Shown here piece after piece: positions 12,701 through 47,197 of a stretch of DNA of 57,430 bases; within the stretch, counting starts at the first letter, position 1; each line of letters opens with the position of its first letter. The position numbers were made by a program, and so were the translations under genes. Source of the stretch: Octopus sinensis (Eukaryota); contig NW_021834816.1 in assembly GCF_006345805.1 (NCBI RefSeq), positions 1 through 57,430 on the forward strand, in the 5' to 3' direction. A model generated the notes under the pieces. The model ran no database searches, was not told the DNA's origin, and saw nothing but the letters and a program-made list of their open reading frames with translations.

Positions 12701-13630
12701 ACATTCAATAATGAAGTCGTAGATATATAAAAATACGGATTGATCAATGATGGGATGGCAACAACAAAAACTACAACATCCACCCAGTTCCACCCAAATC
12801 AACTGTTCTTTAGTTTTTTGTTGTTGTTTTTTTTTTGGCTACTATTATGTTTCACCCCGTGATCCGGCAGTAAATCTTTTCCTTAAATATTCCACCCAAG
12901 AATTCTGTGTCCATCCCCTTTCCAAATACGATAGGGAGAGATACGAGAGCTATTTAGCCGCTGTTCATTGCAGGCCCAACGGTAATATAGATGTTCCCTC
13001 GCTAGTAAAGGCAGCATGTAACATGGTACGACAAACAAGTAGGAGCAACCGTCGAAATTGTAGAAGAGAAAAACAAAGAATTAGATTGTATGTGAGCTAG
13101 AAATTGCAGTATGTTGGTGAAAGAATCTTCGTCAACCAGGCAAATGGCCTCGTTTTGAATGTGGGTCTAAGCTATGTCTTTCTATTCTCAACGTTTGTTT
13201 GTTTACCCACCCACCCACCCCCTCTTGAGTCATCAAATTTTAAAATTCAGTCAGAACATCAACTGCATTGATTTCACCAGTTTAAGACGATTTCAAAAAT
13301 TATCATGGCTGCTACCCCTCATCCTTCTCTGAATCATTAGGAAAAATAGAAAAACTGTGGAGCGTTTTTTGTCAACAATACTAAACAGTTATTGCACAAA
13401 CCTAATATTAGAAATCCTTATTTGTAGAAATCAGTACAGTATCGGATAGAATTCGTTGCAACATTTAATATCTTTATATATATATATATAATATATATAT
13501 ATATATATATATTATATATATATTATATATATATATAATATATATATATATAATATATATATATATATATATATAATATATATATATATATATATATATA
13601 TAGGAAAAAAGCAACAAGAATGGATTAAAA

Positions 13631-13718
13631 TCTCGGTACAATTGTTCGTACGAGGACATCTTTAATAAGCTACAAAAAAATGCAGTAAATATAGATGGCT
13701 CGTACTCGTCAGCCGAAA
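13631..13718 (-). ncRNA. Hammerhead, left arm of F3 (GAAC instead of GAAAC)
   Basis: Mirror image of 14554-14641 with one A missing from the GAAA run. Confidence 0.7.
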
Positions 13719-14553
13719 AAACATCAGAGAATTCCCAAACATCAAAAGGGGTAGATACAAATGAGGGTGTAAGATTAGCTGCATTGAAGAAAGTTCGATT
13801 CCTGGAGATCCGATGAAAGGTCTTGAACTTACAGAATTTGTGCATGTCTATATATAGCTCATATTGAATTGTTAATCAAGTTATGTGAATAAATTTCGGA
13901 TACAGTCATGCGTGTCATATCGTGTAGAGGAACAGATTGTTATTGAAATTTACAAGAATCACAAGTAAGTTCGATTCCTAGAGATCCGATAAAAAGTCTT
14001 GAACTTACAGAATATGTGCATGTCCATATAGTTCATAGTGAATTATTAATCAAATTTTGGGTACAATCGTGCGAAATAACAATCTGCCCCTCTACAGAAT
14101 ATTGTCATTTTGCTTCTCACTCGGATTCCCTGAAATTTTCGCACGATTGTACCCAAAATTTCTTCACATAACTTGATTAATAATTCACTATGAACTATAT
14201 GGACATGCACATATTCTGTAAGTTCAAGACTTTTATCGGATCTCTAGGAATCGAACTTACTTGTGATACTTGTAAATTTCAATAACAATCTGTTCCTCTA
14301 CACGATATGACAGTCACTTTGCTTCTTACCCGGATTTTCCTCTACACGATATGACAGTCACTTTGCTTCTTACTCGGATTTTCAGAAATTTCGCATGACT
14401 GTATTCAATATGAGCTATATATAGACATGCACAAATTCTGTAAGTTCAAGACCTTTCATCGGATCTCCAGGAATCGAACTTTCTTCAATGCAGTTAATCT
14501 TACACCCTCATTTGTATCTACCCCTTTTGATGTTTGGGAATTCTCTGATGTTT

Positions 14554-14641
14554 TTTCGGCTGACGAGTACGAGCCATCTATATTTACTGCATTTTTTGTA
14601 GCTTATTAAAGATGTCCTCGTACGAAACAATTGTACCGAGA
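14554..14641 (+). ncRNA. Type-I hammerhead ribozyme, complete consensus
   Basis: Stem I UUUCGG/CCGAGA; CUGACGA at 14560-14566; stem II GUACGAG/CUCGUAC extended by CAUCU/AGAUG; GAAAC at 14624-14628; palindromic stem III ACAAUUGU; predicted cut after GUA at 14635. Confidence 0.88.
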
Positions 14642-14700
14642 TTTTAATCCATTCTTGTTGCTTTTTTCCTATATATATATATATATATATATATATTCAT

Positions 14701-14955
14701 TTATTCTTTTACTTGTTTCAGTCATTTGACTGCGGCCATGCTGGAGCACGGTCTTTAGTCGAACAAATAGACCCCAAGACTTATTCTTCGTAAGTCTAGT
14801 ACTTGTTCTATCGGCCTCTTTGCCGAACCACTAAGTTACGGGGACGTAAATACACCAACATCGGTGTCAAGCAATGGCGACTGGACAAACACAGACACAC
14901 AAACACACATGCAAATACACATACGCACACAAACACACAAACACACACACACACA
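14701..14955 (-). mobile_element. SINE family A 3' half
   Basis: Family A tail; the head is absent. Confidence 0.85.
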
Positions 14956-15734
14956 TATACCTTATGCCCTGAGTTCAGATCCTACGGAGTTTAACTTTAT
15001 CTTTCATCTATAAATCACCATCATAATCATAGTTATCTGCTGAATATTTTGTGTCTTTACATTGTTCCTACTCAATAAGGACAAACCTTTGGGGTTCAGT
15101 AGCCATTTTGTCTTAATCAGTCCATCTATAATGGTGGTTCAAGCGGGATTTTGATGTCAAAACACACAGAACTGAAATAAATATTGCAGGACAAATCGTT
15201 CAATGTTCAAACCCAGACACACTTTGGACTGGGACTTTATTTTATCAACCCCTAAAAGATAAGAAGCAAAGTTAACCCCGACGGGATTTGAATTCAGAGC
15301 ACAGGAAGCCAGAATATATTTGTCCCCTTAACATACACGGATTGGAGAAAAGAAGGTATTCAGTTGCTTAATACAAAAAGAATGTTCTTTTTGTTTCTCT
15401 ATTTCTTTTTTAAAGATAAGAATTCCACTCATCCTACTTTTGCCCACCCTTGTATTTTAACCTGGATCGATCAGATTAAAGTCTCAATCAATTATTGGGT
15501 CGATTTAATCGACTGAACCTCTACCACCACCAATAAGTGACCTTGCACCCTATGTACGAAAATATCATTACTGATATGGTTGTTCTCGTTTATATTTTAT
15601 CATCCAATGACGAGTGACGTTTCTGGAAGCAACCTCCGTTTGACATTTTACAATACGTGGTTTCTCTAAAGGTGGACGTGTTTCTTGACCTTTATTACTT
15701 TATCATGATATGAAGATAGTCAAGGGGGATGAGA

Positions 15735-16375
15735 TACATACACACACACGCATGTGTGTGTGTATATGTATGTACGTATGTATGTGTGTATGTGTATGTA
15801 TGTGTATGTATGTATGAATGTATATATGTGTGTGTGAGCGTGTGTATGTGTGAGCATGTGTGTGTGTGAGCGTGTGTACTTGTGTATGCATGTATATATA
15901 TATATACATACATATTTATAGTTATATATATACATATATATACACATATATATAGAGAGAGCGTGAGACAGACAGACAGACAGATAGACAGATAGACAGA
16001 TAGACAGACAGATAGACATACAGACAGATAGATAGATAGATACATACATACATACATACATACATACATACATACATACATACATACATACATACATACA
16101 TACATACGTAGGTAGATAGATAGATAGATAGATAGATAGATACATACATACATACAATACATACATACATACATACATACATACATACATACATACATAC
16201 ATACATACATAGGTAGACAGATAGATAGATAGAGAGAGAGAGAGAAAGAGAGAAAGAGAAAGAAAGAGAGAAAGAGAGAAAGAGAGAGAGAGAAAGAGAG
16301 AGAGAGAGAGAGAGAGAGAGAGAGAGAGAGAGAGAGAGAGAGAGAGAGAGAGAGAGAGAGAAATAGATAGATAGA
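15735..16375. repeat. Compound microsatellite (TG/TA/GACA/GATA/CATA/GA)n
   Basis: Read directly from the sequence. Confidence 0.95.
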
Positions 16376-17002
16376 TCTTTGTTTAGGAGAAGAAGCAATT
16401 TTTCTTCTCCGCAAGTTAGTGCAGCAGGACAAACACAAATATTATATACTATGTATTATATATCATACATCATATACACTAATGTCCAATATACCAAAGT
16501 GTTTCACCTCAATTCGATGTTTACCACGAAAAATAAACCCATAGATGAAATCATGAACGAATTAATTGCTAGGCTTGAGATATATATATTGACCATTATA
16601 AGTAACAGTTTGAGACAAGAAAGAGAGAATCGGTCACATGGCATTCAATGCTGCAAATTACGGCAGACATATTTCTTTAGATGGTTACGAGGGTGGTGAT
16701 GTTGAAAGGTGATTCCCATAACAACGGCAGCCAATTTCCTACAGAGGAGTGGAGAAAAAAGTAGAAATCTCTTTTGTATCGAAAACTATTGCTTATATAA
16801 AAGGAATAAATCCGATGTGAATAACAATACTGACATGAACAACAAGAATACTAAATATACAAATGTTGATCTAAATGTAAGACATATGTGAAAATGGCGG
16901 CAACAACAGCAACAATATGGATCTCGTTCACAATGATAAAATTCTGAATAATTTCTATGAGTAATTTATTCTATAAAAAGTAATGTCAGATTCATTTTTA
17001 TC

Positions 17003-17103
17003 ATAACTGTCGATGAATCTCATGGGCAATCATTGTCGGAAAGAAACTGGTAGATCCTGCTTTATCACATGGTCAGCTTTACGTTGATACGTCAAGAGTT
17101 AAG
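17003..17103 (+). pseudogene. Helitron (Pif1-type) helicase C-terminal motif relic
   Basis: TVDESHGQSL...PALSHGQLYVDTSRV matches TINKSQGQSL...FSHGQLYVAxSRV, with one frameshift. Confidence 0.7.
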
Positions 17104-46207: not shown

Positions 46208-46239
46208 TATATATATATATATATATATATATATAATAT

Positions 46240-46395
46240 TTCTTCTACTTGTTTCGGTCATTTGACTGCAGCCGTGCTGGAGCAATGCCTTAAAGGGTTT
46301 TTAGGCGACTTATTCCTTGGAAGCCTAGTATTTATTCTATTCGTTCTTTTTGCCGAACTGCTAAGTTACAGGGACGTAAACACTCCACAGAAACA
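46240..46395 (-). mobile_element. SINE family A 3' fragment
   Basis: Tail homology to family A. Confidence 0.75.
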
Positions 46396-46414
46396 GACAC
46401 ACTCACACACACAT

Positions 46415-46665
46415 ATGATGATGATGATGATGATGATGATGATAATAATAATAATAATAATAATAATAATAATGATGATGATGATGATGATGATGATGAT
46501 GATGATGATGATGATGATAATAGTAATAATAATGATAATGATAATAATAATAATAATAATAATAATAATAATAATAATAATAATAATAATAATAATAATA
46601 ATAATAATAATAATAATAATAATAATAATAATAATGATAATGATAATGATAATGATAATGATAAT
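46415..46665. repeat. (ATG)n/(ATA)n array
   Basis: Read directly from the sequence. Confidence 0.95.
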
Positions 46666-46750
46666 AAAAAGTGATAGCAAAAGAATGAGACCTCTATATT
46701 AGGTAAACAAAGGATTATTTATATATGTATAATTTAAGACAATCAGTAAG

Positions 46751-46826
46751 TTGCCATTATAGTACTCAGAGTTTCGAATGTCAGAGCGAAGAGTTGCGAT
46801 GCATTCTCGTCGGTTATTAATGGCAA
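46751..46826 (-). ncRNA. Hammerhead-like motif, left arm of F6 (CCGACGA core)
   Basis: Long stem I UUGCCAUUAAUA/UAUAAUGGCAA, stem II GAAUG/CAUUC, GAAAC, stem III ACU/AGU, and a GUA site at 46763-46765. Confidence 0.65.
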
Positions 46827-46996
46827 TAGACGCTTTGAAAACCGTTGAGAAAAGAGAAGTTACTCTAATAGATAGAAAAGAGAAAAAATATAAAAGATAA
46901 AAGATTAAAAAATTGCAAGCAACCATATTCTCACAATGCATAGACATAAAACCTCCTGCGTTCATAATGTCTACATACGGTTTTTCATAGCGTCTA

Positions 46997-47072
46997 TTAC
47001 CATTAATAGCCGGCGAGAATGCATCATAGCTCTTCGCTCCGACATTCGGAACTCCGAGTACTATAGTGACAA
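46997..47072 (+). ncRNA. Hammerhead-like motif, right arm of F6, degenerate
   Basis: AUAG-CCGGCGA-GAAUG/CAUUC-GGAAC-UCCGA-GUA-CUAU. Confidence 0.5.
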
Positions 47073-47197
47073 CTTCCTGATTGTCCTAAATTATACATAC
47101 ATACATACATATATACATACATACATACAGACATACATGCATATATATACATACACACATATATATATATGTGTGTGTGTGTGTGTGTGTGTGTGTG

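Follow-up and report, generated by a model that had tools for sequence, protein, structure and literature searches.

Three small hammerhead-bearing palindromes in an Octopus sinensis contig as probable head-to-head footprints of Penelope-like element integration

Three small palindromes, which we call E1, E2 and E3, lie in a 57,430-nucleotide stretch of Octopus sinensis DNA (NCBI RefSeq assembly GCF_006345805.1, contig NW_021834816.1); the whole of this stretch of roughly 57 kb is what we call the window, and all positions are counted in it. Each palindrome consists of two inverted arms, and each arm carries a hammerhead ribozyme (HHR), or what is left of one, that points outward. We argue that each palindrome is probably the footprint of a single integration event, in which a Penelope-like element (PLE), or a noncoding element using PLE machinery, entered an AT-rich microsatellite and left two truncated copies joined head to head. 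Affinity with PLEs rather than with DNA transposons is supported by a PLE-type minimal HHR, a U-rich tail and an AT-microsatellite target. The anatomy of the elements, that affinity, the unequal truncation of the two copies within E1 and the recurrence of the same architecture in a protein-coding PLE pair were all read directly from DNA; how such an object might come about is a question for which we turn to the literature.

The three inverted-repeat elements are real, and they lie essentially where an earlier sequence-only reading of this DNA had placed them. E1 (13603-14669) has arms about 99% identical, with outer blocks of 195 nt and 72 nt that are 99-100% complementary; E2 (41331-41732) has 156-nt arms that are 95% complementary, with 90 nt in between; and E3 (46716-47107) has arms of 126-131 nt that are 87% complementary, with about 131-140 nt in between. 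The inverted arms make up nearly the whole of each element. Perfect microsatellite accounts for about 9% of the window (G+C 36%) and perfect (TA)≥6 tracts for 3.1% of it; E1 sits inside a (TA)n tract, and the flanks of E2 and E3 adjoin TA, GA, CA or ATAC repeats. The AT setting described earlier is thus what we find, with the ends of all three elements adjoining (TA)n or another AT-rich microsatellite, and these flanks make any target-site duplication unreadable. In every arm, the 3′ half of an outward-facing HHR, intact or decayed and with a self-complementary helix III, stands 34-42 nt inside the end. Predicted cuts fall after 14635 in the right copy of E1 and after 41690 in the right arm of E2, and the measured distances from cut to arm end (34, 42 and about 39 nt for E1, E2 and E3) agree with those first proposed.

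E1 tells us most about how its halves are related. Its apparent spacer is the first 61 nt (14077-14137) of the right copy and is homologous to 14283-14336 further along in that copy, which makes it a stretch of the element itself, in one orientation. Further internal homologies join 14075-14151 to 14281-14403 and 14140-14262 to 14403-14485, and the right copy also has a 44-nt tandem duplication at 14293-14383 (found with TRF). E1 is, in short, two copies of unequal length (474 and 593 nt), the left one truncated 61 nt further than the right, and the spacer is the longer copy's 5′ continuation; the junction, at 14076/14077, sits in a short A run. Independent 5′ truncation points are seen in E1, and the layouts of E2 and E3 are compatible with them. 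By analogy with E1 and with the coding pair described next, the 90 nt between the arms of E2 are probably extra 5′ sequence of one copy, to which we assign no orientation.

That coding pair (L001, a homologous locus) lies at 3487-6964 of contig ctg4896 in ENA ERZ25069866, an assembly from another organism, and consists of two PLE copies of 1.27 and about 2.2 kb set head to head. The left copy has a reading frame with reverse transcriptase (RT), HTH_animal and endonuclease (EN) domains; the right copy is 98.5% identical to it, inverted, over 1268 nt, and there is no spacer at the join. An HHR lies about 47 nt inside each outward end, both ends are in (AT)n and the left end alone carries an extra 31-nt tail. 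By analogy, we regard E1, E2 and E3 as miniature versions of this pair. In four further homologous PLE loci from other assemblies (L002, L004, L006 and L008), the EN gene is followed by an HHR whose helix III is self-complementary and whose core is of the U3-A8 type also seen in a solo PLE copy of the window that we describe below; in L002, L004 and L008, the HHR is 55-57 nt from an end adjoining (AT)n, and the contig of L006 stops before the terminus. Across the families of E1, E2 and E3, the solo copy and the loci from outside the window, the distance from HHR to terminus is 34-57 nt, or 78 nt where the extra tail of L001 is counted. A conserved 3′ motif, AUCGGACU, is common to L001, L002, L004 and L008.

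How sure can one be that these motifs are hammerheads? We searched with a strict type-I descriptor of our own design, with 200 first-order Markov simulations as the control, and with a descriptor tuned after the published features of PLE hammerheads (either a C3-G8 or a U3-A8 core, a nucleotide left unpaired beside stem II, and a helix III that is short and self-complementary). The strict descriptor matched twice in the window, where 0.02 matches were expected (at 14554-14641 in E1 right and at a solo site, 40737-40821). The tuned one matched six times, against 0.5 expected, a count reached in none of the 200 simulations; its matches include the solos at 40737-40821 (+), 5580-5625 (-) and 48257-48304 (-). 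The pattern of the HHR 3′ half, GAAAC-N4-5-GUAC, occurs five times, against 0.85 expected, and four of the five are inside the arms of E1-E3. Helix III is self-complementary in all families (ACAAUUGU, ACGAUCGU, ACGGCUGU, ACUCYGAGU, ACCGGU, ACCGCGGU, ACUGCAGU and ACAUGU); the palindromic stem III that had been ascribed to the arms, as ACAAUUGU, ACGAUCGU and ACUCYGAGU, is indeed there. Stems I and II are kept in every family with unrelated sequences, and because the helices are maintained in this way, we take the motifs to be genuine. The stem covariation proposed earlier as a check is also visible between E2 and the solo at 40737-40821, which have a common stem II loop (UGAUGUAAUGUYUGCAUU) and compensatory changes in stems I, II and III.

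The cores themselves, tested as C3 U4 G5 A6 N7 G8 A9, G12 A13 A14, A15.1-U16.1 and H17 with three helices, have fared less well than a claim of one type-I HHR in each arm would have it. Every arm has an outward HHR or an HHR remnant, but only two of the six have an intact core, namely E1 right and E2 right (the latter with one mismatch in stem I); a type-I core is also found in the solos at 40737-40821 and 5580-5625 and, as the known U3-A8 covariant, in the PLE copy, whereas the other four arms lack it. The positions mutated in these arms are invariant in the hammerhead core. From these core sequences, we predict no more than one active arm in each element, and an inactive left HHR in E1. The right HHR of E1 reads UUUCGG / CUGACGA / GUACGAG..(structured 44-nt loop)..CUCGUAC / GAA / ACAAUUGU / A17 / CCGAGA, and its stem II is recovered in the minimum free energy (MFE) fold (z = -3.6). 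That of E2 reads GUGCAG / CUGAAGA / U-UGC..GCA-U / GAA / ACGAUCGU / A17 / CGGCAU; a U3-A8 core for E2 was considered and rejected. The left motif of E3 reads GCCAUUA / CCGACGA / GAAUG..CAUUC / GAA / ACUCUGAGU / A17 / ..UAAUGGC, and the right one has the core changes U4>C, A6>G and A13>G; reading E3 in another register to obtain a canonical core was likewise considered and rejected. Single-arm MFE folds are not diagnostic, those of the E2 arms and of the solo at 40737-40821 being no better than shuffles, as is expected of hammerheads that need dimers.

The window also holds a PLE copy that can be recognized by its protein, and it ends in the same way. A search with tblastn, using 17 EN homologs and the RT-EN protein of L001, found a single PLE coding match in the window, the degenerate GIY-YIG frame at 49009-49550, which has a CX4CxxC linker and two in-frame stops in the stretch that was read. 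The Pfam GIY-YIG model just misses its cutoff here (E = 7e-4), homologs carrying PF01541 and PF26215 are found down to E = 5e-29, and tblastn agrees. At its 3′ end come the HHR, a U-rich tail of 44 nt and (AT)n, an anatomy shared with the arms of E1-E3, and the copy has no inverted partner in the window. Solo HHR fragments are, in fact, as common in the window as pairs, with three pairs against three or four solos (40737-40821, 5580-5625, about 39290-39370 and the PLE copy). Table 1 gathers all of these features.

Table 1. Positions of the palindromes, their ribozymes and the solo elements in the window
Feature	Position	Strand	Description	Basis
E1 left copy	13603..14076	-	474 nt, 5′-truncated; 3′ end at 13603 adjoins (TA)n 13475-13602	inverted repeats, global arm alignment
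E1 left HHR remnant	13631..13718	-	identical to E1 right but for an additional U in the loop of stem II and the loss of one A from GAAA (CGAACAAUUGUA)	
E1 right copy	14077..14669	+	593 nt; X′ unit, X unit (~88% alike), 3′ region with HHR	
E1 right HHR	14554..14641	+	canonical type I; stems I/II/III of 6/7/4 bp	strict descriptor match
E2 left arm	41331..41486	-		
E2 left HHR remnant	41367..41455	-	core AUGAAGA (C3>A); perfect 6-bp stem I	
E2 inter-arm	41487..41576	.	90 nt	
E2 right arm	41577..41732	+		
E2 right HHR	41608..41696	+	core intact; one stem I mismatch; first stem II pair U.U	
E3 left arm	46716..46845	-	outer edge ambiguous (46716-46724)	
E3 left HHR-like motif	46753..46824	-	U4>C; stems I/II present in MFE fold	
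E3 inter-arm	46846..46976	.	purine-rich on + strand	
E3 right arm	46977..47107	+	runs into (ATAC)n 47093-47169	
E3 right HHR-like motif	46999..47070	+	more decayed: CCGGCGA, GGA for GAA	
Solo canonical HHR	40737..40821	+	diverged E2-family relative; no inverted partner	
Solo PLE copy, 5′-truncated	48221..49556	-	GIY-YIG frame, 3′ untranslated region with (TCT)n, HHR, 44-nt tail; (TA)n at both ends	
Solo PLE HHR	48257..48304	-	CGUUACAG / UUGAAAA / GGUC..GACC / GAA / ACCGGU / A17 / CUGAAAUG; U3-A8 covariant core	
Solo compact PLE-type minimal HHR	5580..5625	-	A9 followed by a bulged A; G10.1-C11.1; helix III AUGU; a tRNA-like box B immediately before it	
Decayed relative of the 5580-5625 HHR	~39290-39370	-		

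The left boundary of E3 is ambiguous in the table because its flank is an AT-rich repeat. The families, meanwhile, had been called unrelated, and it is true that E1, E2 and E3 do not align to one another; the word is nonetheless slightly too strong, since E1 and E2 both carry CUUGUUGCUU[U/A]UUUU, at corresponding positions of their 3′ tails. This sequence may be part of an RT start-site signal, and its presence in both tails suggests that related enzymes mobilized them.

For the priming of both target strands, and for a fixed start site as the cause of symmetric termini, we rely on published work. PLE insertions are heavily truncated at their 5′ ends, often have an adjacent inverted and 5′-truncated copy, may carry a tail of 30-40 bp and favor (TA)n (PMC8557442). 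Purified PLE protein cuts both target strands and extends both of them, it initiates reverse transcription at a fixed position inside the RNA, downstream of the HHR and without homology to the target, and insertion in vitro does not require HHR cleavage (PMC11167929). On this footing, the endonuclease would cleave both strands of the target, and reverse transcription would be primed from both 3′-OH ends. If RT began at its fixed internal template site, and not by annealing to the target, both complementary DNAs (cDNAs) would have the same first nucleotide, a few tens of nucleotides downstream of the hammerhead; both would then stop early, which is the 5′ truncation, and would be joined head to head. 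The expected product would be two inverted copies with identical outward 3′ termini, an HHR 34-42 nt inside each and a spacer supplied by the longer copy's surplus 5′ sequence. Priming twice from a single fixed start site would thus account for the symmetric termini and for the constant distance, within a family, from HHR to end. The HHR would be no more than a passenger of the element's terminal region, and the arms would decay neutrally after insertion, with most cores broken by now. A comparison with L1 elements may help here. In L1 twin priming, one RNA is reverse transcribed from both strands of a staggered break, which yields inverted segments within one insertion, and the second primer anneals internally, so that what is inverted is another segment of the element. 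The fixed start site of a PLE would instead give equal termini at both ends and hence a true palindrome.

The arrangement is not new. Dual minimal HHRs about 100-700 bp apart on opposite strands were reported in Schistosoma mansoni and ascribed to truncated PLEs (Cervera and de la Peña 2014, PMC4209133), and because of that report, we regard the opposite-strand layout as already described. The schistosome pairs resemble ours in arrangement, size range, minimal type-I HHR and self-complementary helix III; they differ in host and in families, and the 2014 paper gives them one sentence, without junction or terminus anatomy. PLE insertions with an inverted copy (Evgen'ev and Arkhipova; Arkhipova 2006; Craig et al. 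2021, PMC8557442) likewise share with E1-E3 the outward 3′ ends, the 5′ truncation, the HHR of the terminal repeat and the (TA)n or AT-rich target. Unlike those insertions, the copies in E1-E3 are only 126-593 nt long and have neither a reading frame nor a one-sided tail, and autonomous families to match them were not found in the window.

Several observations sit awkwardly with head-to-head PLE integration, and we would rather set them out together than leave them to be discovered. Substitutions between the arms of E1 are below 1%, yet the arms are also set apart by several indels, of 13, 32 and about 80 nt; a single clean event does not predict this, and we have no confident account of it. 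Both arms of E3 carry U4>C, which implies that their source HHR was already noncanonical. The Rfam hammerhead models report no arm at the gathering score, nor at E ≤ 10 when searched with the elements alone, so that our HHR assignments depend on self-written descriptors and their controls; plausibly, these models do not reach the minimal HHRs of PLEs when stem II carries a long insertion. The origin of the inter-arm sequence is not demonstrated for E2 or for E3, neither of which has another copy in the window, and the E2 spacer has no homology above shuffles with the sequence upstream of the related solo at 40737-40821. Reading frames for RT or EN with the arms of E1, E2 or E3, which the earlier reading had proposed as a check, do not occur in the window, although the EN remnant of another PLE family does; the link of E1-E3 to PLEs consequently depends on HHR type, tail, target and analogy. 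The ends of E1-E3 are symmetric and lack the one-sided tail of 30-40 nt, an optional feature that measures 31 nt in L001. Finally, the evidence on copy number and junctions comes from within the window: blastn and nhmmer found no other copy of E1, E2 or E3 in the window, where each family is single. Outside the window, an 81-aa reading frame of the E1 arm has no relative in a collection of 5.8 billion proteins, and exact-pattern scans of metagenome contigs for the E1 HHR and for the HHR-plus-tail motif common to E1 and E2 gave no match.

What else might the palindromes be? The proposal that started this work was that they are PLE-mobilized palindromic retrozymes, with the whole palindrome as a nonautonomous unit that is transcribed, taken up by PLE RT at its 3′ tail and copied whole. 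The PLE origin in this proposal is supported by what we find, and there is something to be said for the rest of it, given that three different families in one 57-kb window have the same layout, that a transcript across a palindrome has a correct sense 3′ tail, so that remobilization is not forbidden, that noncoding HHR elements seem to be present in this genome (a tRNA-like head with an HHR, at 5580-5680 and about 39290-39440) and that a recent preprint argues for animal retrozymes as nonautonomous PLE derivatives. A distinct class is another matter, and we consider it rather improbable. Each family has one copy in the window, the E1 spacer is a mere consequence of unequal 5′ truncation and is not built in, and the same architecture is found in the coding pair L001 and documented as an integration by-product (PMC8557442, PMC11167929, PMC4209133). 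The two HHRs do lie on opposite strands, as had been noted, so that any transcript has a single sense HHR, and there would be no excision or circularization of a unit; for a read-through RNA of E2, the predicted fold is a 156-bp hairpin (-237 kcal/mol, z = -33), which would bury the HHR; and no element has more than one intact core left. Retrozymes proper carry HHRs in direct repeats, which release the unit for circularization (PMC7761336), and we found no direct-orientation HHR repeat in or near E1-E3, which therefore do not qualify as retrozymes. The metazoan non-LTR retrozymes (Cervera and de la Peña 2020; PMC7761336; preprint 10.64898/2026.07.22.740005) resemble E1-E3 in being noncoding, in their type-I HHR with a weak helix III and in their probable dependence on PLEs; they differ in being direct tandem repeats with at least two sense HHRs per transcript, where E1-E3 have HHRs on opposite strands.

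A variant of head-to-head integration, and one that we think unlikely without dismissing it, would have one strand prime, the first cDNA fold back and prime itself, and the resulting hairpin become an inverted duplication after repair or replication. It would have the same outcome, with identical outer termini and a spacer of 5′-most sequence in one orientation, as in E1, and the short A run at 14076/14077 is compatible with a fold-back primed by microhomology. There is, however, direct biochemical evidence for extension of both strands by the PLE protein (PMC11167929), the copies of L001 (1.27 and about 2.2 kb) would need a fold-back loop of about 0.9 kb, and the large indels between the arms of E1 are easier to reconcile with each arm having been synthesized separately than with one being copied from the other. 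That the palindromes are instead miniature inverted-repeat transposable elements (MITEs) or foldback DNA transposons with long terminal inverted repeats, and their HHR-like motifs coincidences, we find very hard to believe. MITEs and foldback elements, it is true, are also small and noncoding with long inverted arms, and the TA-rich flanks could mask a TA duplication. But the 3′ half of the HHR lies at the same distance from the end and in the same orientation in all three elements (with the counts of the 3′-half pattern given above), two arms have full canonical cores against the 0.02-0.5 descriptor matches expected by chance, the helices covary between families, and the real PLE copy at 48221-49556 has the same 3′ anatomy; the termini are those of a retroelement, with a ribozyme and a U-rich tail where RT starts, and no transposase remnant or recognizable transposon terminus was seen. 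Equally far-fetched, in our judgment, is an artefact of sequencing or assembly, in which chimeric fold-back reads created false palindromes, even though the arms of E1 are about 99% identical and lie in (TA)n that is hard to assemble, and inverted PLE structures are known to trouble assemblies (PMC8557442). The arms of E2 and E3 have diverged (95% and 87% complementary) with changes that include those of CpG type, the arms of E1 are unequal in length with several indels, and L001, from an independent assembly, has the same structure.

Other occupants of the window deserve a brief account, and some of them, namely the RT fragments, the short interspersed repeat and the TTAGGG repeats, give it the look of animal DNA. 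A small element is present in two decayed copies, at 5521-5680 (-) and about 39288-39440 (-), each with a tRNA-like head (box A-like TAGCGTAATGG and box B-like GGTTCGAAAT) followed by the compact PLE-type hammerhead; ARAGORN finds no tRNA in the window, although tRNA-like boxes precede these two solo HHRs. The layout recalls that of HHR elements resembling short interspersed nuclear elements, such as schistosome Sm-alpha, and because of these two copies, it is probable that nonautonomous HHR elements exist in this genome. A short interspersed repeat with TGACTGCGGCCATGCTGGAGCAC occurs seven times (at 4152, 6353, 14727, 21668, 23082, 45845 and 46263; none expected), and one of its copies begins just where the (TA)n to the right of E1 stops. 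An (ATCT)n plus 22-mer array occurs twice, at 20869-21116 and 22275-22528; its recurrence and the 1414 nt that separate the copies of the interspersed repeat at 21668 and 23082 suggest that a segment of about 1.4 kb was duplicated in tandem. RT fragments of the long interspersed nuclear element (LINE) type lie at 1359-2093 (+), 24672-26111 (-) and 43336-44517 (-), none of them PLE-like; the part at 44173-44517 matches Pfam RVT_1, and the best relatives of the fragment at 1359-2093 are only 56% identical. From 29500 to 33200 there are about 3.7 kb of adjoining trinucleotide arrays (TGG, GAT, GGT, CAT and CAA), followed by 1.1 kb of (ATGT)n at 33491-34623, and at 37686-37743 there is an interstitial telomere-like repeat with TTAGGG three times in a 27-nt unit that is itself repeated about twice.

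One may imagine more for such palindromes than a place in the genome's attic. Head-to-head pairs of PLE 3′ ends might be remobilized as self-propagating parasites of PLEs, or their read-through hairpins might feed small-RNA silencing of the matching PLE families; both are long shots. Were silencing the right reading, each insertion would act as a built-in "vaccination" against its parent PLE, for the hairpin spans both the ribozyme and the region where RT starts, and a link by way of hairpin and small RNA would tie the chemistry of PLE integration to host defense. The present data lend this no support.

The main value of the finding is practical. The earlier worry that such palindromes would be mislabeled as MITEs is a reasonable one, since annotators tend to call them MITEs or foldback elements, and there is a similar hazard on the RNA side: hairpin-based Rfam microRNA models (MIR821, MIR8562 and MIR6224) match the palindromes at 13973-14252, 41443-41620 and 46804-47019. 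Scans of the window by Rfam E-value also return hundreds of microRNA "matches" (mir-297 and mir-3149 among them) that are microsatellites or palindrome hairpins. Such matches are a likely source of false microRNA annotation. These short palindromes are most likely retroelement footprints, prone to be annotated as MITEs, foldback elements or microRNAs, and E1, E2 and E3, if our interpretation holds, would serve as compact examples of how PLEs may prime on both strands of a target from one fixed RNA start site.

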